Assembly (NCBI RefSeq): GCF_001194135.2
Contig: NC_068986.1
Span: 82,969,993 to 83,003,173 of the forward strand
Origin: Octopus bimaculoides
Taxonomy: Eukaryota
Direction of reading: 5' to 3'
DNA length: 33,181 nt
How positions within the stretch are numbered: position 1 is the stretch's first letter; each line of letters opens with the position of its first letter. The notes beneath the pieces are model-generated. The model was not told the DNA's origin and did not search any database. It saw nothing but the letters and a program-made list of their open reading frames with translations. Below are positions 2,059-33,181 of the stretch, one piece after another. The translations under genes were made by a program, and so were the position numbers.

Positions 2059-3140
2059 TACAAGGTACATTCCAGAAGGTTAGAGACGTTCATTAATTTT
2101 GAAGAAGTACAAAACTTTCATCTCCTTCAATGTAGGATCCTCTGACTTCAATACATTTGTCATAGTGCTCCAGCCACTTCATGAAGATCCCATGGAAGTC
2201 CTCCAAAATAAAAATATCCAGGATCCTTGTCACATCCACCTTCATCTTCTGTCTTGAAAACAACTGCCCATGGTTCTCCTTCAGCTTGAGGAACAACCAA
2301 ATGTCACAGGGAGCAAAGTTTGGACAGTGGGGAAGGTGAGAGAGAGTTTTGATGCCCATCTCTGTCAAGTAGTTGATTATCAGGACGGAAATGTGGATTA
2401 GTGCAAGTGCCAATGACCATAGTAGGAGAGCTTTGGCCTTTTACAAAATCTCTTCCTGAACTCCCTCAAAATCTTCACAAAATACTCTTTGCTGATCATC
2501 TGGCCAGAGCGAACCCAGTAAATGTAGATGATGCCCTTGCTGTTGAAAAAGGGGATTATCGAGTGCTTCCCAATGGACTTGCTTTTCCTGACCATCTTGG
2601 ATTCGGGGGAACTAGGATGCTTCCATTGGACACTCTGTCTCTTGGTCTCTGGATCATAACAGCAGATCCAGCTTTTGTCACAGGTCACCTGAGATTCAAG
2701 TACTCTTGGACTGGAGGTTAATGACCCTGCTATCACCAAAGCAACTTTTCCTTCTGTTATTCTAGGAACAAACTTTGTACATGTTGAGATCTTCATGAAT
2801 AATTTGTTGTACAGATGCCACACCAACTCCAAATTGTATGTTTATTGTCTTTGATGTACAAAGGTCTTCATTCAGAAAATTGCAAAATTTTTCAACCAGT
2901 TTTTATGTTCTGACACCCCTCACTTTCCCCCACTTTTCATTGTCTCCCACTTCCTTTCTACTGTCCTTGAGCCTCTTGTGCTAGAGAAAAACAGATGTTC
3001 ACAAGTTAATCCATAAGTAGTCTGGAGGATTTCATAAGTTTTCATAGCATTCTGCAAGCTAGTCAACTATCATAAGCAGTATTTACTAGGGTAAAAGTGT
3101 TCAAAGTGCTGTTACAGCCATCTCCTTCAATCTGATATAC
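2059..3140 (-). mobile_element. Degenerate near-full-length mariner (DD34D-type) transposon; transposase broken by stops and frameshifts
   Basis: Minus-strand fragments: NAMKTYEILQTTYG (HTH region, ~3050), VTCDKSWICCYDPETKRQSVQWKH (ORF 2398-2832), HLPHCPNFAPCDIWLFLKLKE (ORF 2093-2413; cf. mariner HPPYSPDLAPCDFWLF). TA-CAAGG... terminus-like sequence at 2059. Confidence 0.88.
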
Positions 3141-3369
3141 TAAAATTACAATGATTTGTCTCTCCTCTGTCTTAAAACATAAACTTCCTATGTGACAGGT
3201 GCACTAGAGTAGTACATACTGTGAACACACCAGATATAAACTCCTTTGATTGCCTGGATGTCTCACTAGAAGTAGTTAATAGCTTTTGTTACTGAGGAAA
3301 TATAATTAACAGGGAGGGTTGTTGCTCTGAAAGTATAGTAGTGAGAATAAGAATGGGCTGGAGAAAGTT

Positions 3370-3830
3370 CAGGGGGCTACTTTACTGTTAGCAACAAAGG
3401 TCTTTTCCCACAGATCAAAGGGGAAATTGAAGGATACTTGTGTTTGAATTGCAATGCTGCATGATACTGAGACATGGGCTTTGAATGCAGAAGACTGGAA
3501 AGAAATGAAGTGAGCATGCTTTGTTGGATGTGCATGAACAACAGTATACATGTTTGGAGAGAAACACTGAGCATAAGAGGAATCAGGTGTAGCGTACAAG
3601 AAAGAAGACTGCACTGGTGTGGATATGATGTGCATGGATGAGGATAACTGCATAAAAAAAGTGCTGATCGTTTAATGTGGTTGGATTTCATGGAGGAGGA
3701 AGACCCGGGAAGATATGAGATGAAGTGGTGAAGGCTAATCTCAGGATCCTGTGCCTCATTGAGATGACAAAGAACTGAAATATCTGGCAGTATGAGGTTC
3801 TTGAGTAGACCCACCCATTTCAGGGAAACT
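3370..3830 (+). mobile_element. RTE-clade LINE, degenerate ORF2 C-terminal fragment
   Basis: Frame-broken translation gives AMLHDTETWALNAED...ERNEVSMLCWMC...VQERRLHWCG...MDEDNCIKK...DEVVKANLR, matching the RTE C-terminal ETW / W-GHV-RM / RP region. Confidence 0.75.
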
Positions 3831-4299
3831 GAGTTCTAGAAGCACCAGATATATTCTCTCCACCCATACATTACAGTGATTCATTCCATCCACCACCCAA
3901 CGAAATCAAATTACCTCTGACCATGTGCAATGCTTGCCTCTTTCCTTAATACTCCTGCAGCCTACCCAAGCATGTCCTATTTCTTGTCCTTCCCCAGTTA
4001 ACTATAGCATTACTATCCTGCCACTCTGCTCTCTTCTGCATCCCTCTATCTTCCTCAACTCATGACTTATCAGTTATCCACCCTTCGGCCCCACCCAATT
4101 TCTATAATTAGTTTGCTTTGCCATCACCTCAACTCCTACTCCCCATACAATCTTGCAAATCCCCACCCATCCCATCTACTCACCTTGTGTCTTGAGGAAC
4201 CACCTAGACACTTCATCACCATAATCTATCTCATTGCAGCACCTGCAGACCATTTCTCTCCCTCACCTGATAAATATCAGCAGCTATGCAACTTCAATA

Positions 4300-4440: not shown

Positions 4441-4519
4441 NNNNNNNNNNNNNNNNNNNNNNNNNNNNNNNNNNNNNNNNNNNNNNNNNNNNNNNNNNNN
4501 NNNNNNNNNNNNNNNNNNN
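4441..4519. other. Assembly gap (79 N) between (TA)n and (CA)n microsatellites
   Basis: Directly visible N run. Confidence 0.98.
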
Positions 4520-7444: not shown

Positions 7445-7864
7445 GGCACTGTCATGGTATTAGCTGTCAGAAGTGAAAGTAGAACTGACAAGGAACGTTA
7501 CTGCTGGTTTGAGTTGATTCTTTGGCTGCTGACTAGCCGGAGCTATCTATCTGTCTGTCTATCTCACTATCTATCTCTCTCTATCTATCTATCTATCTAT
7601 CTATCTATCACTTGTTCACCTCTGTGTCCGTAGAATTTATCAAATTAGAAAACGCAAATTTAATATAAAAATATATTTTCTGAAATTGCATATTATTTAA
7701 AATATAATTTTCAACAGAGAGAATTTATCAAAATAGAAAACAAATGAAGTTTGAAGTTTAAAAATAATAGGATCGACCACTCACGACTAGCCCTGCTCGG
7801 ACGCGCGACTGCGCGTTCGGGACCATGGATATAGGTGTCGAATTTGTTCCAATAACTTTCGAGT

Positions 7865-8069: not shown

Positions 8070-8630
8070 TTTTTTTTTTACCCGACAACAATATGTTTCA
8101 TATTTTATCAACATATTTTTACGAGAAGGAAAAGAACATTAAAAGTATATAAGATCAAATTATCAACTACCTCACCAAGGAAAAGGAAAAAAGGAGTTGG
8201 GGGAATTAAGCAGCAGAAGAAAGAGTGGAGTGAGAAACGGGTTCTACACTCCGGACCAATGGCGTGTTTAGCCTCTCGCACACGATTGCCAAGGCGTTGC
8301 CGCTGAGAATGGCTAGTGACACTCGCTGCAGCAACTATCCCAACTTCGCAGTGCTCAGTTCTCAGACGGCGGCAGTCATCTCGATTTTTCAGAGGAAATC
8401 GGCAGTGCGGGGTCGAGAACACCTGAGGTCTCGATGGCGACCCGCAAAAACTGATAGCGGCCGGTCAGGCTCCTGTGTTTATTTACTTTTCTCTCCTCTA
8501 TGTTACAGGCGACGATACCTGGGTTTGCAACCGATGCAGCAAGACTGGAGCCGAAGAACGTGTCGCAGCACGTTGCGTCCTAGATTAGGGACCTGCCTCC
8601 CACGTATGCAAAGAGGGTTATGCCGTCTAT
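8070..8630 (-). mobile_element. CRE-clade non-LTR retrotransposon 3' end (restriction-like endonuclease region, 3' UTR, A-tail)
   Basis: Minus-strand translation IDGITLFAYVGGRSLI*DATCCDTFFGSSLAASVANPGIVACNIEERKVNKHRSLTGRYQFLRVAIETSGVL, then after a frameshift LLQRVSLAILSGNALAIVC. Pyrimidine-rich 3' UTR and A10 tail (T run 8070-8079). Confidence 0.8.
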
Positions 8631-8686
8631 GTATTTATTCACAAGATAATATTATTGAAACGCACTTAAGTCGCAAGGTATCTTAC

Positions 8687-8860
8687 CTTAACATACCGCC
8701 CCTCTGTCTTCTTTCTGCCTCTCCTTGAATACACCTAGGTTGTTATACATGTCCCTTCTATATCCTATATATACATATGCTGAAACTACGTAGTATATAT
8801 GTTTAAAGTCGAGGCGATACCAATAATGTGACAACAGCATGGCATGACTGACCGGAAGTT
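8687..8860 (-). promoter_or_regulatory. Candidate non-coding first exon/promoter of the 6-finger ZNF
   Basis: ETS-like CCGGAAGT at 8852-8859. Minus-strand donor AAG|GTAAGA at 8687/8686. Minus-strand acceptor ttgttgtatttcag|GAA at 7153/7152. Motif evidence only. Confidence 0.25.
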
Positions 8861-9459
8861 GAAAACAAACTAACAGACGAAGACAAAATTAGCAAAACAT
8901 GGTGATAAAGGGCACAATAATTGTTACAGACAAAAACAACATTAAATTATCCATACGTTAAATTTTTTGACACTGCTTTATTTTTTATAATCAATTTACG
9001 CCTGTCGAAATACAAGAAAAATTAATGAAGGAACTTTCAAGGGAGCTAACTCCTCTTCTCTTATAAAATGTTCTCTGAATTTCATGTTTCGAAAAATATT
9101 TCGCTGAAGTTTTTTAGTTTAATGATACTTTAAAACAAGTTTTCAATATCATTTTATTACTTTTTAACGAGTTGAAAACTCCAAAGTTTTACCAGTAAAC
9201 CCGTGCTTCCATCGAGCACCCAGAAGCTAATATGGATGTATATAAATTCAAACTCTTCAGGTTAAACAAAATTACACACATTCACCTAAAACACCTAAAG
9301 CTAAAAGCACTCATCAATATCTGCAATTACTCGTGCCAACCCCACCAAATTGATACAACCTGGAAAATAGATCAAATATATATTTGTGTGTAATCACAAT
9401 TTTAAAGCCCCACAAATAGTCATCAACAAATAGTGGTACACCCTTAAAAGGGCGACGAA

Positions 9460-10560
9460 AATAGAATCAGTATGGTTTAGCAAAGAAATAGCGATAGGAA
9501 AATATATATTAGAGGTAGACCTAGATAGAAACTTAAAAGAGGCCGTTAGGAAAGTATTCGTAACCAACGTGCTTGCGGCAAGAAAGGCTGCATTGTTAAA
9601 GTTAAAGCATGTGCACTAAGGCACAAGGAGGCGAAAAAGGTGAATGGACCCAAATGAGAGAGGTGCAACGGGGCATATACCCATTATGGTCTTCGATGGA
9701 TCATAATGGGTATATGCTACTTGAGCTCGAGCAAATGTGTATGACTTAGCAGTTTTTCGCTCGACGAACTGAGATGAATGTTGAACGGAAATGCGATTTC
9801 AGTGTCCACATCAACGGCCTGCTGCACCTCTAGGTAAGGGGTGCGGATTGTTGCGAAAAGCCAATAACAACCGTAGAAATACGGGAAGTTATGATTGGCT
9901 GCACGGAGGGCTTGTGGTTTTGATAGTCTGCCCTACGAGTTTTACTTTTATAAGCCTGTCTTGTTTCGGAGGCCGCTTGGCAGATATCTACTGTAACTGG
10001 CAGCAGAAAGGAAGAATTTCTAATTCTGTGTTTTGAGGAACGGTGATACTGCTGAGAAAGAACCCGAACAAAGAAGGTGAATAAATAAATTTTAGGCCCA
10101 TTTTCAAAACTATTATAGATTGCAGATTTCAAAACTTTGACTAAGTTGTTAGCGAAGAGGTTTGCGCTTGTCATCAAGGATCTGATTAGTGCTGCGCAAA
10201 TATGCGCCATCCCAAGTAGGTCTATTCTTGACAACCTTACCTCATGCGATACATCATAGAAAGAGTGTGTAAAGAACCTGACATAGTTGGAGTCCTAATT
10301 AATCAGAAGCTTTAAATAAATTCAACAATACTTGTCAGCTGTTCTCATGTTGGCTGGTTTCAGTCCTGTCTTCTGCGACTGGATTATCACAATGTTCAGC
10401 TACATCTGCTGGGTACTTCAGGTGAATGGTCACTTATCAGAACTTTCTTGTATTATGCACTGGATCTTCACGATTTTCCCCTCTCTTCTCGTCTGCTTAT
10501 ACTAACTCTAGTCATTACTACGGAAACTGGGGACGCTAAGGAGCATTCTGCATGAACTAG
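9460..10560 (+). mobile_element. L1/Tx1-clade LINE ORF2 fragment (RT N-terminal half), degenerate
   Basis: Frame-broken motifs CEKPITTVEIREVM, GFDSLPYEFY, GTVILLRKNPNK, NFRPI, DFKTLTKLLAKRF, AQICAIPSRSILDNL, MRYIIERV, LQVNGHLSE. Confidence 0.8.
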
Positions 10561-10663
10561 AACGTGCTTCCAATAGGTGGTAGTAATTACTTTTTATAAT
10601 TTATAGATCCAGGGGAAATTGTTGTGACTGAACTCTCCCAAGCTTCTGTTACATTGCAATGTC

Positions 10664-10870
10664 GATACTACTAAAGCAGCGCGGACCCGAACGCGCAGTC
10701 GCGCGTCCACACTAGCTAGTCGTGAGTGGTCGATCCTAACCCTAACCCTAACCACGTATTCATTTGCACACGCGGGTTAGGGATAGGGTTAGGGTTAGGA
10801 TCGACCACTCAAAACTAGCTAGCGCGGACGCGCGACTGCGCGTTCGGGTCCGCGCTGCTTTAGTAGTACC
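10664..10870. mobile_element. 207-bp MITE with 9-bp TSD (Mutator-like by TSD length) and internal telomeric repeats
   Basis: TSD TGCAATGTC at 10655-10663 and 10871-10879. Arms of ~90 bp begin G(A/G)TACTACTAAAGCAGCGCGGACCCGAACGCGCAGTCGCGCGTCC. Inner ends read (CCCTAA)n at 10735-10753 and (TTAGGG)n-like at 10774-10799. Confidence 0.9.
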
Positions 10871-11039
10871 TGCAATGTCTATGTTCACAGACCTCTCTTT
10901 GAGCTAGCTCTGCGAACTATATTTTCATTCTTTTTTCTTTGATCATTTAAATAGTTTAATACAAAACCACATTAAATTACAAATCGTAAACAATAGTCAT
11001 GTTTCTTCCATAATTTTGTACAAAAGAAAGACAACGAAA

Positions 11040-11415
11040 AGAAGGAAAAAGGAGAGAGGAGAAAAAATGAGGAAAAAAAACATCAATGCAGCGCCAAATG
11101 CTTCAGTCGGTCGCACACCACAAGGTTCAACGGAACATACTGAAGCAAGCCAGCACCCACGCAGTATTACCACGGGTGATGGCGAGGCTAAGACGTTGGA
11201 AAAGCTAAGCGTGAGCCGCCAACTACAAGAACTTCGCCGTTAGAACTTCATTACAGGCCGGAAGAAATGGTTCATTAACAGGTCCCGATACATAAGGATT
11301 TTGTTCCGTTCGGCTACGGAAGCAGTGAGCCTCCCATTTACTGCAGCATCCAGGATTTGAGAGGGAGCAAAGGGGTCACAGACTGTGACATCCCAGATGA
11401 GGCACCTACCTCTTA
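11040..11415 (-). mobile_element. CRE-clade non-LTR retrotransposon 3' fragment (endonuclease region)
   Basis: Minus-strand VRGRCLIWDVTVCDPFAPSQILDAAVNGRLTASVAERNKILMYRDLLMNHFFRPV, then after a frameshift FQRLSLAITRGNTAWVLAC. Confidence 0.8.
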
Positions 11416-11943
11416 CCTAAGCTTTTCATGGCAGTCGAATAACTCCAATTCAACAGAAATTTGAACACACCTATGGTAAAAGACTTTCTTGCCATCATCA
11501 TCCGGTCTTTATTTATACACTGTCAAATGTGTCTTTCAGCATGTGATTTGTTGGTACCGAAGAAGGAAAAAAATATTTAAAAAATTTTGCCCGTAAATCT
11601 ATTCTAGCATATTAAGTTCCTTCATAAAGGCTCCCTTGTTGATAAATAATAGTTATATTGGATGTTTTTTTTAAATTTCATCATGCGTTTGATATAAATT
11701 GGAGGAAGTAAATTATGATTGAAGGTGTTTCTCAATTAAATTGTGTTAGGGACTTTTAGCATGTCACCGGTGTCATTTTGACAAGGGAAGCATTGTTATT
11801 GACACCGTGTACTTAATATCCCAATGTTTTGTTCAGTTAATTGATTTATATTGTATAAACTCACAAAAAAAATTCTTTTAACAATAATAGATTGTATTCA
11901 CACACACTTCTCAGTTTTTCAGAATTCCTTGTAACTTGATAAT

Positions 11944-14769
11944 ATGGAAGACGTTGATCACGTAGACACTTCAAATACAGCAGTTTTGAATGCTATAGAT
12001 TCAGATACAAGGACATACAACAGTGAGAAATTTTTACATAGTGAAACATTTACTAAACAAAGATCATTACAGAAAAACATTACTGAATATTGTTGTGAGA
12101 TTTGTAAGAAAAGATTCTCTTTAGAAGAGGAAGTCATCATACACAAAAAAATACACAACGAAAAATCTTACCAATGTGAAACATGCAGAAAATATTTTGT
12201 CAATAAGCGTTCTTTGACAAGGCATAAAAGAATACATACTGAAGAAAATCCCTGTCACTGTGAAATATGCGGGAAATCATTCTCTGTTAAGTCTAGTCTT
12301 GTAGTTCACAAACGTAGACACACTGGTGAACAACCATTTCAATGTGAAATTTGTGGGAAATCTTTTGTCGCTAACACTGATTTAACAAGTCATAAACGAA
12401 TTCACACTGGAGAAAAACCATATCCATGTGAATTATGTGGGAAATCGTTTACCAATAACAGCAATTTACACAGACATGAACGAATACACACTGGAGAGAG
12501 AAAATGTTCCTGTGAAACATGTGGAAAATCTTTTGTCAATAATAATGATTTAAGCAGACATAAAAGAACACATACTGGAGAGAAACCATATTACTGTGAA
12601 ATATGTGGAAAATCATTCACTAATGATTTTAATGTTGTCACTCACAAACGTAGTCACACAGGAGAAAAACCCTATAATTGCAAAATATGTGGAAAATCTT
12701 TTGCCAACAATAATGATTTAAACAGACACAAAAGCATACACACTGGAGAAAACCCTTTTAATTGTGAAATATGTGAGAAATCCTTTGTCAGTATTGGTAA
12801 TTTAAACAGACACAAAAGTATACACTCTGGACAAAAACCCTATCCTTGTCAAGTATGTGGAAAATCTTTTGTTAATAATAGTGATTTAAACAGACATAAA
12901 AGCATGCATACTGGAGAGAAACCATATCACTGTGAAATTTGTGGAAAATATTTTGTGAGTATAGGTGATTTGAACAGGCACAAGAAAATACATACTGGAG
13001 AAAAACCCTATCCTTGTGAAATATGTGGAAAATCTTTTGTCCATAATAGCTATTTAACAAGGCACAAAAGAATACACACTAGAAAAAATCTGTATCACTG
13101 TGAAATATGTGGAAAATCTTACACTGATAATACAAGATTTATTATCCACAAACTTAGTCACAGTGGAGAAAAGCCTTACTCTTGTGAAATATGTGAAAAA
13201 TCATTTGTCACTTTTTACGATAAAAAAAGACACAAACGAATACACCTTACAGAAAAACCATTTTGCTGTGATATATGTGGGAAATCTTTTATTCAAAATG
13301 CTCATCTTGTTATCCACAAATTTAGTCACACTGGTGAAAAACCTTATTATTGTGAAATATGCGGGAAAGCTTTTGCTAGTACTAGTCTTATGAAAAGGCA
13401 CAAAAGAATACATACTGGAGAGAAACCTTATCCCTGTGATATATGTGGAAAATCATTCTCTGTTAAGTCTAGTCTTGTAGTTCACAAACGTAGACACACT
13501 GGTGAACAACCATTTCAATGTGAAACTTGTGGCAAATCTTTTGTTGATAATACTGATTTAACAGGTCATAAACGAATTCACACTGGAGAAAAACCATATC
13601 CATGTGAATTATGTGGGAAATCGTTTACCAATAACAGCAATTTGCACAGACATGAACGAATACACACTGGAGAGAGAAAATGTTCCTGTGAAATATGTGG
13701 AAAATCTTTTGTCAATAATAGTGATTTAAGCAGACATAAAAGAACACATACTGGAGAGAAACCATATTACTGTGAAATATGTGGAAAATCATTCACTAAT
13801 GATTTTAATGTTGTCACTCACAAACGTAGTCACACAGGAGAAAAACCCTATCATTGCAAAATATGTGGAAAATCTTTTGTCAACAACAGTGATTTAAACA
13901 GACACAAAAGCATACACACTGGGGAAAAACTTTTTAATTGTGAAATATGTGGGAAATCTTTTGTCAGTGTTGGTAATTTAAACAGACACAAAAGTATACA
14001 CTCTGGAAAAAAATCCTATCCTTGTCAAATATGTGGAAAACCTTTTGTTAGTAATAGTGATTTAAACAGACATAAAAGCATACACATTGGAGAAAATCCT
14101 TATCCTCGTGAAATGTGTGGAAAATCTTTTGTCAGTGATAGCTTTTTATGCAGACATAAAAGCAGACTCAATGGAAAAATAGTGTTTCACTGCGAACTGT
14201 GTGGGAAATTATTTCTCACTAATAACAGTAGAAAAAGACACAAACTTATGCACCTTACAAAAAGACCATTTCATTGTGAAATATGTGGGAAATCTTTTAT
14301 TCAGAATTCTCATCTTGCTATCCACAAATTTAGTCACACTGGTGAAAAACCTTATCATTGTGAAATATGTGGGAAAGCTTTTGCTAGTACTAGTCTTATG
14401 AAAAGGCACAAAAGAATACATACTGGAGAAAAACCTTATCCCTGTGATAGATGCAGGAAATCATTCTCTAATAAATCTAGTCTTATTGTTCACAAACGTA
14501 GACACACTGGAGAACAACCATTTCATTGTGAAATTTGTGGAAAATCATTTGTTGATAATAGTGATTTAACAGGTCATAAACGAATACACACTGGAGAAAA
14601 ACCATATCCATGTGAATTATGTGGTAAATCGTTTACCAATAACAGCAATTTACACAGACACGAACGAATACACACTGGAGAAAGAAAATGTTCCTGTGAA
14701 ATATGTGGAAAATCTTTTGTCAGTAATAGTGATTTAAACAGACACAAAAGAATACATACTGAGTTATAA
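11944..14769 (+). CDS. Poly-C2H2 zinc-finger protein, 941 aa, 32 finger units (31 intact, finger 25 broken), no recognisable KRAB/SCAN/BTB/ZAD domain
   Basis: Uninterrupted ORF: 48-aa leader, then 28-aa units with TGEKP-like linkers. Acceptor ctcagtttttcag|AATTCC lies 21 nt upstream of the ATG with an in-frame TAA between them, so that intron is in the 5' UTR. Confidence 0.95.
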   Translation: MEDVDHVDTSNTAVLNAIDSDTRTYNSEKFLHSETFTKQRSLQKNITEYCCEICKKRFSLEEEVIIHKKIHNEKSYQCETCRKYFVNKRSLTRHKRIHTEENPCHCEICGKSFSVKSSLVVHKRRHTGEQPFQCEICGKSFVANTDLTSHKRIHTGEKPYPCELCGKSFTNNSNLHRHERIHTGERKCSCETCGKSFVNNNDLSRHKRTHTGEKPYYCEICGKSFTNDFNVVTHKRSHTGEKPYNCKICGKSFANNNDLNRHKSIHTGENPFNCEICEKSFVSIGNLNRHKSIHSGQKPYPCQVCGKSFVNNSDLNRHKSMHTGEKPYHCEICGKYFVSIGDLNRHKKIHTGEKPYPCEICGKSFVHNSYLTRHKRIHTRKNLYHCEICGKSYTDNTRFIIHKLSHSGEKPYSCEICEKSFVTFYDKKRHKRIHLTEKPFCCDICGKSFIQNAHLVIHKFSHTGEKPYYCEICGKAFASTSLMKRHKRIHTGEKPYPCDICGKSFSVKSSLVVHKRRHTGEQPFQCETCGKSFVDNTDLTGHKRIHTGEKPYPCELCGKSFTNNSNLHRHERIHTGERKCSCEICGKSFVNNSDLSRHKRTHTGEKPYYCEICGKSFTNDFNVVTHKRSHTGEKPYHCKICGKSFVNNSDLNRHKSIHTGEKLFNCEICGKSFVSVGNLNRHKSIHSGKKSYPCQICGKPFVSNSDLNRHKSIHIGENPYPREMCGKSFVSDSFLCRHKSRLNGKIVFHCELCGKLFLTNNSRKRHKLMHLTKRPFHCEICGKSFIQNSHLAIHKFSHTGEKPYHCEICGKAFASTSLMKRHKRIHTGEKPYPCDRCRKSFSNKSSLIVHKRRHTGEQPFHCEICGKSFVDNSDLTGHKRIHTGEKPYPCELCGKSFTNNSNLHRHERIHTGERKCSCEICGKSFVSNSDLNRHKRIHTEL
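12253..14769 (+). repeat. Higher-order tandem repeat of finger blocks (1176 bp, 1008 bp, partial 333 bp)
   Basis: Finger series A-N (12253-13428), A-H plus one broken finger plus L-N (13429-14436), A-D (14437-14769). For example YPCELCGKSFTNNSNLHRHERIHTGERK occurs at 12421, 13597 and 14605. Confidence 0.92.
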
Positions 14770-19004: not shown

Positions 19005-19319
19005 GTGTGCGTGCGCGCGCCTATGTGATAATTTCTCTTAAGCATAGCGATACTAATAACCAGTTGTTAGAACTCAATACGAGTACAGAGTGTAATGTTA
19101 ATTATTAAATGACACGGGAGCAGGGATCACATAATCTACTTCATTAACTTACATCTGTTTCTGCTATAAGAAACAGTGCACTCAGAGCCGAGTGCTTGTG
19201 CAACATCTTATAGCTTCCTTGAAACCATTATATACACAAACACACACACGTAGGTAGGTATGGATGTATGGTTATGAATGCTCATTGATCAGATCACTGT
19301 ACATTTATATTTAATTAGT

Positions 19320-19667
19320 GGCTATTCGTTTTGAATTTTCGATTCCCAGACCGGGCGCTGTGAGTGTTTGTTGAGCGAAAACACCTAAAGCTCCACGAGG
19401 CTCCGGCAGGGGATGGTGGCGAACCCTGCTGTACTCTTTCACCACAACTTTCTCTCACTCTTACTTCTGTTTCTGTTGTGCCTGTAATTCAAAGGGTCAG
19501 CCTTGTCACACTGTGTCACGCTGAATATCCCCGAGAACTACGTTAAGGGTACACGTGTCTGTGGAGTGCTCAGCCACTTGCACGTTAATTTCACGAGCAG
19601 GCTGTTCCGTTGATCGGATCAACTGGAACCCTCGACGTCGTAAGCGACGGAGTGCCAACAACAACAT
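19320..19667 (+). mobile_element. SINE-like element with (CAA)n tail
   Basis: B-box-like ttcgattccc at ~19339. GC-richer body ending ...cgacggagtgccaacaacaaca. Confidence 0.6.
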
Positions 19668-20162
19668 TCGTTTTGAATGAAATATACGCCAAGACGAAGT
19701 TGTTTGATCTCTAGTGAACGCGATCCGGCAAACTATAATACTGTTGCATTTATTTTTATTATCGAGAACTACTCTGTCGAATCTTTTATTCCCACCCCCA
19801 TCACATTTTTTAAGATGCAAGGGCACAATTTGAAAGGAATTTGGCTGATACTTTTATAGGGTTTCAGATCCTCTGTCGTTGATACGTAATAAATATGTTG
19901 AACCATGTTTTATAATGAGTTGAACATAACTGACGGTATTTTGAATGTATTAAATTATGTTAGGAACTTTTAACCTATGTCACCGGTCTTATTTTGTTGA
20001 GCGAAATATTGTCACTGATACCGCTTACTTGATTGTAATTAATTCAGTCAATTCAATTGTATCATGTAAACACAGTATCATGAAATCTATGAACCATAAT
20101 AGATTATTTTAATAGACATTTCGTAGTTTTTTTTTTTGTTTAAGAATTCCTCGAGAACTAAT

Positions 20163-21245
20163 ATGGAAGACGTTGATCGTTTGGACTCTTCAAACATGAC
20201 AGTTTTAAATAATGTAGATTCAGTCATGCAGACACACAGTGAGAAACCTTTACATAGTGAAACATGTACTATACAAAGATTATTACACAGGAATGTTAGT
20301 GAATATCATTGTGATATTTGTAGGAAAACATTCCCTTCAGAACAAGAAGTCTTCACACACAAAAAAGTACACAATAAGGAAAAATCGTTTCACTGTGAAA
20401 TTTGTGGGAAATCATTTATTCAGAATTCTCATCTTATTATTCATATACGTAGTCACACTGGAGAAAAACCCTTCCACTGTGAAATATGCGGGAAATCTTT
20501 TGTTAATAACAGTATTTTAAAGACGCACAAAAGAATACATACTGGAGAAAAGCCTTATCTTTGTGAAATATGTGGGAAATCTTTCCCCTCAAACAGTAGT
20601 TTAACAAGTCATAAAACAATGCACAATGGAGAAAAACTCTTCAACTGTGAAGTCTGCGAAAAGTCTTTCATGAAGAACTCGAATCTTATTATCCATATAC
20701 GTAGTCACACTGGAGAAAAACCGTTTCACTGTGAAATATGTGGGAAATATTTTGTCGATAGTAGCTATTTATCAAAACACAAAAAAATACATACTGGAGA
20801 AAAACCTTTCCACTGTGAAACATGTGGAAAATCATTTATCACTAGCAGTCTCTTAAAAAGGCACAAAATTATACACACTGGAGAAAACCCGTTTCATTGT
20901 GAAATCTGTGGGAAATCGTTCAATGTTAATTCTCATCTTATAGTTCACAAACGTAGTCATACTGGGGAAAAACCATATCATTGTGAAATATGTGGCAAGT
21001 CGTTCGTCGATAAGAGTAATTTAACAAGACACAAAATAATACACAGTGGAGAAAGACCTTTTCATTGTGAAATCTGTGGTAAATCATTCTCTGATAATTC
21101 TAATCTTGTCGTTCACAAACGTAGACACACTAGACAAAAGCCTTATCATTGTGAAATATGTGGGAAATCTTTTCTCACCAAGAGTCACTTAAAAAGACAC
21201 AAACAAATGCAAACTAGAGGGAAGCCTTTTATTTGTGAAGCATAA
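20163..21245 (+). CDS. C2H2 zinc-finger protein, 360 aa, 11 finger units (last lacks second His), paralog of 11944-14769
   Basis: The ORF track start at 20136 is TTG within the polypyrimidine tract, so the ATG is 20163 (MEDVDRLDSS...). 47-aa leader, 11 x 28-aa units, finger 11 ends HKQMQ, truncated 12th unit FICEA*. Acceptor tttgtttaag|AATTCC 18 nt upstream. Confidence 0.92.
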   Translation: MEDVDRLDSSNMTVLNNVDSVMQTHSEKPLHSETCTIQRLLHRNVSEYHCDICRKTFPSEQEVFTHKKVHNKEKSFHCEICGKSFIQNSHLIIHIRSHTGEKPFHCEICGKSFVNNSILKTHKRIHTGEKPYLCEICGKSFPSNSSLTSHKTMHNGEKLFNCEVCEKSFMKNSNLIIHIRSHTGEKPFHCEICGKYFVDSSYLSKHKKIHTGEKPFHCETCGKSFITSSLLKRHKIIHTGENPFHCEICGKSFNVNSHLIVHKRSHTGEKPYHCEICGKSFVDKSNLTRHKIIHSGERPFHCEICGKSFSDNSNLVVHKRRHTRQKPYHCEICGKSFLTKSHLKRHKQMQTRGKPFICEA

Positions 21246-26872: not shown

Positions 26873-27942
26873 CAGGATGTGATGGGTAAATTGTCACCAT
26901 TTTATATTTTTAATTTCGTGCATGTGCATTGTTTTTGATTTTGTCAACTACACAATATAGTAGGGTCAGTTGGGGCATGGTCTGCAAGGAAAACAGCATG
27001 ACGCAATTCACTCTGCCAGAAATTTGGAAATGACACGCTGTACTGGTTGGCATTTGTGCCGGAAGTTATAAAAATCACACTGAGAGTGAAAAAAAATTGT
27101 GCTGAGAGTGATAAAAGTCAAAACATCCAGTCATCATCATGGTGTTTGAAGTGATCCCTGGTGATGGCAATGTTATGCCTCCATTCATCTTCCTAAACGG
27201 CCTCACACTCAACATGGAGGCCTACATCAAGTGACTGGAAGAGGTACTGCTGTCCTGGGTGAAGAGGGTGGCTATTGGAAGATCCTGTGTCTGGCAAGAG
27301 CTCAGCACCGTGCCACAAGCAAGAGAACCCAGCCATGGCTGTCAGGCAATTTCTGACCCCCCCCCCCCNNNNNNNNNNNNNNNNNNNNNNNNNNNNNNNN
27401 NNNNNNNNNNNNNNNNNNNNNNNNNNNNNNNNNNNNNNNNNNNNNNNNNNNNNNNNNNNNNNNNNNNNNNNNNNNNNNNNNNNNNNNNNNNNNNNNNNNN
27501 NNNNNNNNNNNNNNNNNNNNNNNNNNNNNNNNNNNNNNNNNNNNNNNNNNNNNNNNNNNNNNNNNNNNNNNNNNNNNNNNNNNNNNNNNNNNNNNNNNNN
27601 NAACATCTGGTCACCTAACTCCCCACTCTGCAACCCCCTTGATTATCATGTGTGGGGTACAGTTGAGCAAGAGACCAGTAACACCAAAGATAAGCTGATG
27701 GCAAGGATTATGGCAGCATTCACCAACATAAACAAGGAGACTGTCCAGAAGAGTTGCAGGAGATTCCAAAGTGGTCTGGAAGCCATGGTTGCAGCCTATG
27801 GTGATTTTATTAAATAAATTTACTCATAAGTATTTCAAGATATTTTTATGTAATTTTGATAAATATATCTGTTAAAATGAGATGCCAGTGTTATTTTCAT
27901 TTTTGCATAATTTGAAGGACAGTTTATTCACTGCACACCCTG
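26873..27942 (+). mobile_element. Internally deleted Tc1/mariner element, DD37D (maT-like) transposase C-terminal part
   Basis: TA-flanked imperfect TIRs CAGG(A/G)TGTG...TAAA(T/C)TGTC. Fragments HPVIIMVFEVIPGDGNVMPPFIF and NIWSPNSPLCNPLDYHVWGTVEQETSNTKDKLMARI...RFQSGLEAMVAAYGDFIK. Confidence 0.8.
27369..27601. other. Assembly gap (233 N) inside the transposase relic
   Basis: N run directly after a C homopolymer. Confidence 0.98.
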
Positions 27943-30002: not shown

Positions 30003-30705
30003 CTTTTGTTTCAGTTATTTGACTGTGGCCATGCTGGAACACCACCTTAAAGGGGTTTTGTCAAAGAAATCGATTCCAGGACTTATTCTTTATATGCCTA
30101 GTAATTATTCTATCAGTCTCTTTTGCCAAACCACTAAGTCACAGAGACATAAACACACCAGCATTGGTTGTTAAGTGATGGCAGGGAGACACAAACACTC
30201 ACATACATACACACCTGTGTGTGTATATATATATATCATCATCATCATCATCGTTTAACGTCCGCTTTCCAAGCTAGCATGGGTTGGACGATTTGACTGA
30301 GGACTGGTGAAACCAGATGGCTACACCAGGCTCCAATCTGATTTGGCAGATTTTCTACAGCTGGATGCCCTTCCTAACGCCAACCACTCAGAGAGTGTAG
30401 TGGATGTTTTTACGTGTCACCCGCACGAAGGCCAATCAGGCGGTACTAGCAACAGCCACGCTCAAAATGGTGTATTTTATGTGCCACCCGCAGAAGAGCC
30501 AGTCCAGGAGCACTGGCAACGATCTCGCTCGAAAATCCTTACACATGCCACGGGCACAAGTGCCAGAAAGGCGACGCTGGGCACAGGTGCCATCACAATA
30601 CATACATACACACGATGGGCTTCTTTCAGTTTCTGTCTACCAAATCCACTCACAAGGTTTTGGTTGGCTTGAGGCTATAGTAGAAGACACTTGCCCAAGA
30701 TGCCA
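30003..30705 (-). mobile_element. SINE (same family as 29378) interrupted by an RTE 3' tail at 30236-30600
   Basis: 30003-30200 is the reverse complement of the SINE 3' part and 30615-30705 of its middle. 30236-30600 is collinear with 27973-28300, starting at (CAT)n. Confidence 0.75.
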
Positions 30706-30960: not shown

Positions 30961-31890
30961 TCATAGGCCATCATAGCAAGCTTTCCCACGAGTGTGGATA
31001 CGTTTGTGAGAAGATAAATTACAATTTTGAGAAAATGATTTCCCACAGACATCACAGCAGTATGGTTTTTTCCCTGTATGAACAAGTTTATGGTAAGACA
31101 AGCCACCACTCTGAGAAAATGTTTTACCACAAATATCACAATAATACGGGTTCTCTCCAGTGTGGATCCGCCTGTGAGATATCAAGCTACCATTCTGCGA
31201 AAATGTTCTACCACAGATATCACAGTGATATGGTTTCTCTCCTGTGTGAATACGTTTGTGAGAAGACAAACTGCCACTGTGAGAGAACATTTGACCACAG
31301 ATATCACAGTGGTATGGTTTCTCGCCAGTGTGAACGAGTTTGTGGTAAGACAAACCACCACTCCGGGAAAATGATTTACCACAGATATCACAATGATATG
31401 GGTACTCTCCCGTGTGTATACGTTTGTGATAAGATAAACTACCATTCAGAGAGAATGTTTTACCACAGATATCACAATGATATGGTTTCTCCCCTGTGTG
31501 TATACGTTTGTGATAAGATAAACTACCATTTACAGAGAATGATTTACCACAGACATCACAGTGATATGGTTTCTCACCTGTATGTATACGTTTGTGGGAA
31601 GATAAATTACTATTTTGAGAAAATGTTTTACCACAGATATCACAACAGTGTGGTTTCTCTCCTGTATGAATATGTTTGTGGAGAGACAAGGAACAATTTG
31701 TAGTAAACTTTTTACCACAAACTTCACAGTGGTACAGCTTGGAGACTGAGTGATTTAATTTATGTTGAATCAAATTCTTTCTTGTTGTTAATGATTTTCT
31801 GCATATATCACGAGGGTAGGATTTCTCTTTTGCATTTTCCTGTGTCTGGGTAGATGAATCAATATACTCAAGCCTTGCTTTCTTATTCAT
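30961..31890 (-). CDS. C2H2 zinc-finger protein, 309 aa, 10 finger units (first broken: YPRDIC)
   Basis: The ORF track start at 31905 is GTG and the first in-frame ATG is 31890. Nine intact 28-aa fingers with TGEKP-like linkers. Minus-strand acceptor tctttctatttcag|ATAAG at 32020/32019. Confidence 0.92.
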
Positions 31891-32233
31891 AACTTTGTGT
31901 TCCACATCTATCCAAACTTGAGTTATAAAAAACAGGTTGGCATCAGTTTGATGAATGAATTAGTTTTAGTCTTCAAAAGTTGATAAACATGTTGATCATT
32001 TTCAGTGAAATATTCTTATCTGAAATAGAAAGATATAAGGGACAATGAAGTATAAGCATGAAAATTATTGGAGAGAAGATATCTGACCATAAATACTACA
32101 AGTTAGATTAACAAAAAGACACATATTTACAGAGAGAAAAAAACAAGAAGCAATTACCTTACAGTCAATTCATTGGAGTAATCCCAAAACCCAACACCCT
32201 CCCCTCCCAATTCTACGGCCTTGGCCTTTAAGG

Positions 32234-33120
32234 AGGCTATCCACATGCTAGAAATAACAGCCAAATCTCACAAAACTGCGATAACATAACGAAAGAAATA
32301 TGTAATCAATCTACTCACCTTTCTGCAAAAATTTCTTTCAGAGAAATTTCCTGCAGTAATATGACAACTGGAGTCGATAACAAAACCACAATCCAGTGGT
32401 ATGAGTTTTGTAGAGAAGTGTGTTCGGGGAAGATGCTTCTGGACAAAGCTCCGCTCGGTGGTCCAGGTCACGAAGTAGAAATAGACGAGAGTTTGCTCTT
32501 TAAAAGGAAAAACCACGTCGGGAGAGTAAGCCATCAAACGTGGGTTGTTGGATGTTATGACATCACAGTGAAGAAAGGGTTTCTTCAACGTGTTCCTGAT
32601 CGAAGCGCAGCAACACTTGAGGCAGTAATTATTGAGAATGTGTTACCGGGTACTGTAGTACATACCGACAAATGGGCCAGCTACAGGAATTTAGAACAGC
32701 TGGGTTATATTCACAGGACGGTGAACCATTCAACAAATTTCGTCGACCCTGAAACTGGCGCTTGTACGAACCATATTGAGGGCTACTGGTCCCGAATCAA
32801 AAGACGGCTGAAATATGTGACTGGATCATCGGGTGACATGAAATGGTCCCGCGTTGATGAGTCAATGCATCGAGAAATGTATGGATTTACTGCGAAGAAA
32901 AGCTTTGAGAATTTCTATACATTTATCGAACACATTGCGGAAGTTTATCCTCCCTAAACTCCATCAGCGCGGCTTCCCCGAACAAACTTATCGACGAAAT
33001 TAGGAAATTACTCTGAAAGAAATCTCTGCAGAAAGGTGAGTAGATTGATTACACATTTCTTGTTTTATTTTATCGCCTTTTTATGAGATTTGGCTGTTAT
33101 TTCTAGCATGTAAATAGCCT
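32234..33120. repeat. 119-bp inverted repeat pair flanking the Merlin transposase (32234-32352 and 33002-33120)
   Basis: Ungapped manual alignment gives 13 mismatches in 119 bp (~89%). Each arm contains GCAGAAAG|GTGAGTAGATTG, pointing outward. Confidence 0.92.
32361..32957 (+). CDS. Merlin-superfamily (ISXO2/IS1595/IS1016-like) DDE transposase, 198 aa, apparently lacking the N-terminal region
   Basis: GGPGHEVEIDES, KRKNHVGR, DRSAATL, PGTVVHTDKWASY, GYIHRTVNH, FVDPETGACTNHIEGYW. The three acidic catalytic positions (IDE, TDK, IEG) are present and there are no internal stops. Confidence 0.88.
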   Translation: MTTGVDNKTTIQWYEFCREVCSGKMLLDKAPLGGPGHEVEIDESLLFKRKNHVGRVSHQTWVVGCYDITVKKGFLQRVPDRSAATLEAVIIENVLPGTVVHTDKWASYRNLEQLGYIHRTVNHSTNFVDPETGACTNHIEGYWSRIKRRLKYVTGSSGDMKWSRVDESMHREMYGFTAKKSFENFYTFIEHIAEVYPP

Positions 33121-33181
33121 GTTTGGGGGGGGGGTAACAATCATAATTTACGTGTTTTTACGCATATATATATATATATAT

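Follow-up and report, generated by a model that had tools for sequence, protein, structure and literature searches.

A putative truncated Merlin transposon copy with outward-facing splice-like motifs between a zinc-finger gene and a caspase-3-like gene of Octopus bimaculoides

Inverted arms around a truncated transposase

We investigated the right end of a 33,181-nucleotide (nt) stretch of Octopus bimaculoides DNA (the window; window position p corresponds to CM046606.1 position 82,969,992 + p in assembly GCA_001194135.2), where an open reading frame (ORF) of the Merlin transposase family lies between two inverted arms. The region examined comprised 41.9 kb, that is, the window together with an 8.7-kb rightward extension (locus L003), and "extended-window" numbering covers both. 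The segment at window 32234-33120 (CM046606.1 ~83,002,226-83,003,112) would be best explained as an 887-bp, 5'-deleted and internally deleted, non-autonomous copy of a Merlin (IS1595-like DDE) transposon, which would sit between a C2H2 zinc-finger (ZNF) gene on the minus strand and, beyond a 4.1-kb gap, a caspase-3-like gene on the plus strand. A first-pass annotation of this DNA had pointed out the same arms, each of which carries a donor-like splice motif facing outward, and had proposed that they serve as first exons of ZNF genes. We consider it probable that the Merlin copy is an inert remnant whose donors are incidental.

The ORF occupies 32361..32957 on the plus strand and encodes 198 amino acids (aa) from its ATG, with the frame already open from 32340. 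The product matched the Pfam profile PF12762 (DDE_Tnp_IS1595) with an E-value of 2.7e-20 (73.3 bits, cutoff 27), and 160 homologues were retrieved, nearly all of them with PF12762. The closest relatives were ISXO2-like transposase domain proteins of O. bimaculoides itself, with 80-87% identity, and at least nine such sibling proteins in this species carry various internal deletions, as is usual when a multi-copy DNA-transposon family decays. Full-length relatives measure ~290 aa and start with a zinc-ribbon/helix-turn-helix region, and the window ORF aligned only from their residue ~93. Thus, the ~92 N-terminal residues are absent from the window ORF while the catalytic DDE domain is kept, and no remnant of the N-terminal coding sequence was detected anywhere in the 41.9 kb. 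Since the missing part is the DNA-binding one, the copy should be non-autonomous. The ORF would then represent the C-terminal catalytic two-thirds of a transposase that lost its N-terminal portion along with any 5' leader, and the copy would be unable to move itself. The residues D49 (in EIDES), D110 (HTDKW), and E147 (NHIEGYW), numbered from 32340, fall in conserved or invariant alignment columns, which we take to be those of the catalytic triad.

The stop codon is followed by a 3' spacer of 44 nt (32958..33001, plus strand) that extends to the right arm. The sibling protein P0016 continues past the stop with KLHQHGFPGQTSRQN, where the window spacer would encode KLHQRGFPEQTYRRN, indicating that the sequence right up to the right arm belongs to the transposon. 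Two more distant relatives from Logan contigs, presumably of other species, P0003 (63% identity) and P0004 (59%), were without comparable arms.

The left arm, the putative 5' terminal inverted repeat (TIR), spans 32234..32352 with the outer end A-GGCTAT, and the right arm, the putative 3' TIR, spans 33002..33120 with the outer end ATAGCC-T. The arms measure 119 nt each, are separated by 649 nt, and are 89% complementary, with 13 mismatches consisting of seven transitions and six transversions. With the Pfam match between them, the earlier description of inverted arms around a Merlin transposase was borne out. The arm cores (26 nt and 27 nt) did not recur elsewhere in the window and were matched by none of 100 shuffles, which places the repeat far beyond chance. 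A sensitive blastn search detected no further arm copies in the 41.9 kb, and the 24- and 26-mers of the arms gave no match in the metagenome or prokaryote genome collections. Since the arms have diverged by 11%, a palindromic misassembly beside the gap is excluded. We also tested the arms as rearranged N-terminal coding sequence of the transposase, and this origin was rejected, as 58 and 182 of 500 shuffles reached the scores of the arms alone. The arms and spacer taken together gave a marginal similarity to the N-terminal coding region (9 of 500 shuffles reached the score).

Merlin elements are eukaryotic transposons related to the IS1016/IS1595 family of bacteria, and they are defined by TIRs of 24-462 bp that start with 5'-GG, target-site duplications (TSDs) of 8-9 bp, and a DDE_Tnp_IS1595 domain (PMC8101967, citing Feschotte 2004). 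The first-pass annotation had reported no GG terminus, but the arm-to-arm homology starts with A-GGCTAT on each side, and GG is thus present at both outer ends. It had also described a weak similarity, in a G-rich tract, that continues outward from the arms. This continuation has a local score of 16, a value that 165-185 of 500 shuffles and 127 of 490 random genomic segments also attained, and is therefore at chance level. The GG termini, the arm length within the defined range, the stop of similarity at the outer ends, and the 3' spacer common to P0016 all support the arms as TIRs of a Merlin copy. We infer that they are the true ends of the transposon, which is the most economical interpretation, as both length and GG terminus agree with the definition, whereas the duplication does not. 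These results uphold the structural half of the first of two earlier models, in which the arms are Merlin TIRs that were exapted as promoter and first exon of the ZNF gene.

Splice-like motifs and the neighbouring genes

On the minus strand, the left arm has a predicted donor-like 9-mer, AAG|GTGAGT (AAGGTGAGT), at 32313..32321, whose exon would end at 32319; its mirror lies in the right arm at 33033..33041 on the plus strand, where the exon would end at 33035. Upstream of the ZNF, an acceptor-like site, cttatatctttctatttcag|A, is predicted at 32019..32039 on the minus strand, with 32019 as the first exon base. The left donor (32319/32318) and this acceptor-like site (tctttctatttcag|A, 32020/32019) have the correct orientation and order, and would enclose a candidate intron of 299 nt. 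The positions of the left donor and of the mirror donor (33035/33036), as well as the 299-nt spacing, were exactly as the first-pass annotation had given them.

We then asked how far such motifs exceed chance. The window contains three instances of MAGGTRAGT, namely in both arms and at 4178-4186, against 1.44 expected, and at least three occurrences were reached in 14 of 100 shuffles. Because the repeat makes the arm donors mirror copies of each other, the three amount effectively to two independent occurrences. With a donor weight matrix, the arm donor scored 12.5, the maximum, and five window sites on both strands scored at least 12. With a crude acceptor weight matrix, the ZNF acceptor scored 2.9, an ordinary value, as ~92 window sites on both strands reached at least 3; the presence of such a site between the left donor and the ZNF ATG is thus unremarkable. 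The candidate leader from 32019 to 31891 is 129 nt long and contains four upstream ATGs, which speaks mildly against splicing at these sites. The outward donors would then represent a single AAGGTGAGT motif that, being part of the repeat, inevitably appears in mirror image at both ends. They are most likely incidental, and we infer that they are unused. As a separate observation, the third donor 9-mer lies within a 13-nt identity with the arms at window 4174-4186 (TCTACTCACCTTT), for which blastn gave an E-value of 0.22, consistent with chance.

The C2H2 ZNF coding sequence is located at 30961..31890 on the minus strand, with its ATG at 31890, and encodes 309 aa in a single coding exon as annotated. 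Indeed, an exact match to the product is recorded as a single-range coding sequence in GCA_001194135.2, CM046606.1. The gene had been described as a 10-finger ZNF; nine of these units are canonical C2H2 fingers, while the tenth, at the N-terminus, is degenerate.

On the other side, an assembly gap of 4122 N starts exactly at the right end of the window (extended-window 33182-37303; L003 4588-8709), with (TA)n tracts on both of its edges, the window-side tract being 33164-33181. Potential splice partners of the right-arm donor within 4 kb are unsequenced, as they fall in this gap. The next annotated gene past the gap is the caspase-3-like gene XP_052824874.1, which lies head-to-head with the ZNF gene on the plus strand (extended-window 37942-38727; L003 3164-3949 minus) and consists of a single exon with a Peptidase_C14 match of 2.3e-60. 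Its upstream region is rich in CpG (observed/expected ratio, o/e, up to 1.9; segment extended-window 37,500-38,100) and contains a GCGGAAGTGACGTA motif ~350 nt before the ATG, as well as acceptor-like sites at extended-window 37788 and 37875 (154 and 67 nt upstream of the ATG).

The identity of this neighbour bears on the second of the earlier models, in which the arms would be paralogous first exons of a head-to-head ZNF gene pair that arose by inverted duplication and whose shared promoter harbours a transposase fragment. A plus-strand ZNF exon had been envisaged in the next few kb, and none is annotated there, the 4122-N gap being followed by the caspase-3-like gene. Furthermore, the 41.9 kb contain four ZNF genes, and no arm-like sequence was found near the other three, whose 5' regions show no similarity either to the upstream region of this ZNF gene or to the arms. 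The model would accord with the missing TSD, and the 4.1-kb gap could in principle conceal an exon, but the arm-adjacent spacer is common to another Merlin copy. Since the right neighbour is a caspase gene and the arm is found at no other ZNF gene in the region, the model is unsupported, and we regard it as highly improbable. For the same two reasons, there is no support for the proposal, made for both models, of a bidirectional cassette that drives ZNF genes.

Observations at odds with an inert copy

Several observations weigh against an inert Merlin copy with incidental donors. In agreement with the first-pass annotation, no convincing TSD of 8-9 bp was found around the arms: the best flanking pair, CTTTAAGG/GTTTGGGG, matches at five of eight positions, and a scan of alternative boundaries gave two low-complexity near-matches, compared with ~6 that we estimate to be expected by chance. 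In addition, the arms differ at 13 of 119 nt, whereas the ORF departs at only ~12 of ~196 aa from a family consensus made by eye. If the TIRs were identical at insertion, this ORF divergence would predict, as a rough estimate, ~6 arm mismatches.

A third observation is an inner inverted repeat of 27 nt, one copy of which lies within the ORF at 32406..32432 (codons FCREVCSGK, conserved across the family) and the other in the 3' spacer at 32973..32999. The two copies are complementary at 23 of 27 positions with an exact core of 12 nt. None of 1000 shuffles reached their local score of 34, the highest shuffle score being 25, and an exact match as long as the core was obtained in one of 2000 shuffled spacers. 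The left copy is 53 nt from its arm and the right copy 2 nt, and neither the repeat nor this offset is predicted by a simple history of TIRs plus internal deletion. As P0016 shares the 3' spacer, the inner repeat is a family feature. It could stem from a long degenerate TIR that overlaps the ORF in a short subfamily, from foldback copying in which a left end that was already truncated served to rebuild the right end, or from an mRNA panhandle. In any of these cases the duplicated unit contains transposase coding sequence, which argues against arms that are host exons on either side of a lodged fragment, and thus counts further against the paired ZNF first exons considered above.

The foldback origin may be extended to the arms themselves, which would then not be Merlin termini. 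Under this scenario, a local inverted duplication would have copied the left flank and the first ~200 nt of a 5'-truncated Merlin fragment to its right end, which later lost 51 nt, and the unit may then have been copied elsewhere. Such a history would account for an inverted repeat that runs into the transposase coding sequence, for the lack of a TSD, and for arms more diverged than the ORF suggests. Against it, both arms end exactly at GG, as in Merlin TIRs (PMC8101967), and the presence of the spacer with the inner 27-mer in another family copy makes it a family feature, which is easier to reconcile with transposition-competent ends. We therefore consider foldback of the left end unlikely.

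The remaining points against an inert copy concern its possible use by the host. Over the 1.3 kb upstream of the ZNF gene, the correct strand has no strong donor besides that of the left arm. This is mildly suggestive, as we estimate a chance of ~8% for it from the density of such sites in the window. Moreover, the CpG o/e of the transposase ORF is 0.98, compared with a window median of 0.40, and this undepleted CpG may leave room for promoter or exon use of the element. Patches with an o/e of ~1 were found at window 8100-9000, 10500-11400, 19200-20100, and 32400-33100, so that every one of the four ZNF coding exons has such a patch 0.1-1.5 kb upstream of it, and a similar patch precedes the caspase-3-like gene. 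The patches partly coincide with other repeats, as in the case of 10.6-10.85 kb, where the patch contains a repeated element, and the CpG signal is thus ambiguous, fitting young repeats as well as promoters, and no specific promoter mark.

These are the observations that would favour the functional half of the first earlier model, in which the Merlin remnant was co-opted: antisense transcription would start inside it, and splicing from the 32319 donor to the 32019 acceptor would yield a non-coding first exon of the ZNF gene, while the mirror donor at 33035 might serve the plus-strand neighbour. The donor is a perfect consensus, the acceptor-like site 299 nt downstream has a pyrimidine tract and lies 129 nt before the ATG, the transposase segment resembles in its CpG content the patches upstream of other genes here, and acceptor-like sites are likewise found ahead of the caspase ATG. 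It is known that host genes can acquire splice sites and exons from DNA transposons (bioRxiv 10.1101/2020.05.07.082677). However, the case is built on motifs, of which the donor has a chance-level frequency and the acceptor is ordinary; the leader would hold the four upstream ATGs, the CpG-rich patches overlap other repeats in part, and the caspase gene has a CpG-rich upstream region with GCGGAAGTGACGTA of its own. Such a co-option appears to us distinctly unlikely. A broader version, in which the decayed Merlin copy serves as promoter and first exon in both directions, with donors that splice to the ZNF leader and toward the caspase gene, and in which the long repeat (119 + 27 nt) could form double-stranded RNA in read-through transcripts, seems about equally unlikely.

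The right arm also contains a strong acceptor-like site on the minus strand, atctactcacctttctgcag|A, predicted at 33025..33045 with 33025 as the first exon base and a score of 6.4. Together with the perfect left-arm donor at 32319, this site (33026/33025) would bound an antisense exon of 707 nt, and the antisense core could thus equally be an internal cassette exon. In that case, the ZNF transcript would start farther to the right, within the gap or near extended-window 37,600, in the CpG-rich segment, from a promoter in common with the caspase gene, and would include the core as an internal 5'-untranslated exon from 33025 to 32319. This proposal is purely motif-based, it implies an exon as long as 707 nt, and the unsequenced part of the interval amounts to 4.1 kb; we judge it very unlikely.

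We also looked up the exact products of the transposase ORF, the ZNF gene (309-aa and 314-aa versions), and the caspase gene. As a result, only the genome record was returned in each case, and the collection seems to be without O. bimaculoides transcripts. Since the caspase, too, was found only as a genome record, the missing transcript matches are uninformative either way. A search with the ZNF-specific N-terminus afforded one unrelated 76-aa fragment of a paralogue, and generic zinc-finger matches dominated the search with the full-length ZNF protein.

Related transposons and other features of the region

Like other members of the Merlin superfamily, the octopus copy is small and has a DDE_Tnp_IS1595 domain and putative TIRs that start with GG and fall within 24-462 bp, and unlike them, it is without a recognisable 8-9 bp duplication and its repeat resumes inside the coding sequence. 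It further differs from autonomous Merlin elements, whose full-length transposase measures ~270-330 aa, in lacking the N-terminal third. A canonical Merlin for comparison was found at 2237-3395 of locus L004, which stems from the European Nucleotide Archive contig ctg11833_24x_l of an unrelated assembly. This element of 1159 bp encodes the protein P0010, which has 50% aa identity to the window ORF and belongs to a protein cluster of n=63, and it is flanked by ~58-nt TIRs starting with GGCGTAGG and by a perfect 9-bp duplication, GTTTTTACT. The octopus copy shares with it the transposase family, TIRs starting with GGC, and a compact build. In contrast to the octopus copy, the canonical element has the 9-bp duplication, shorter TIRs, and the N-terminal zinc ribbon in the same ORF, and its TIRs and the octopus arms have unrelated sequences beyond the first three bases.

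The octopus copy also resembles the internally deleted non-autonomous derivatives that are precursors of miniature inverted-repeat transposable elements, as both ends are kept, the interior is shortened, and the remnant ORF would be unable to bind its own ends, with sibling copies in O. bimaculoides that have different internal deletions. It resembles transposon-derived promoters and first exons in lying directly upstream of a host gene with correctly oriented consensus splice motifs. In the documented cases of transposase capture, however, the splice sites have been observed in mRNAs (bioRxiv 10.1101/2020.05.07.082677), whereas those of the octopus locus are predicted motifs. As transposon-supplied splice sites are established, co-option of this copy, if true, would be another example of a known phenomenon.

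The locus is best regarded as an ordinary transposon insertion, which adds a further decayed DNA transposon to a genome rich in repeats. If RNA of the ZNF or caspase gene did start in or splice from the element, the importance would be modest. Transposon-derived first exons are well known in other animals, and the conceptual gain from one derived from Merlin would be correspondingly small; to our knowledge, no Merlin-derived promoter or first exon has been documented in the expanded C2H2 family of cephalopods. A small structural peculiarity, of interest when copies of the family are compared, is the extension of the 27-nt inner repeat into the coding sequence. A literature search on octopus Merlin elements and ZNF first exons returned no paper that addresses this locus, and an Rfam scan of the window detected zero RNA families.

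Other decayed transposons are present in the window. An ORF fragment at 2398-2832 on the minus strand carries a partial DDE domain of the mariner-type Transposase_1 family (Pfam 2.3e-06), representing another decayed DNA transposon. A sequence of ~54 nt occurs three times, at 7768-7821, 10686-10738, and 10796-10848, with 89-91% identity. The two copies near 10.7 kb lie close together in inverted orientation, and the sequence is probably a small inverted-repeat transposon. The window also contains two further runs of N, at 4441-4519 (79 nt) and 27369-27601 (233 nt), the latter of which breaks the apparent C-terminal end of a transposase-like ORF (…PLDYHVWG…) that gave no Pfam match. Immediately 3' of the ZNF gene, window 30237-30600 comprises a (CAT)5 microsatellite followed by ~350 nt of GC-richer sequence with spurious plus-strand ORFs, and this stretch looks like an interspersed repeat.

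Among the other ZNF sequences, a 941-aa ORF at window 11944-14769 on the plus strand contains a multi-finger block (with THKRSHTGEKPY) that is repeated approximately three times, indicating internal tandem duplication of multi-finger units. Finally, two plus-strand ZNF paralogues (window 11500-11990 and 19720-20210) have the common N-terminus MEDVD…, and both carry an acceptor-like sequence, …cagttttt(c/t)…ag|AATTCC, ~25 nt before the ATG, with homology that extends upstream of it.

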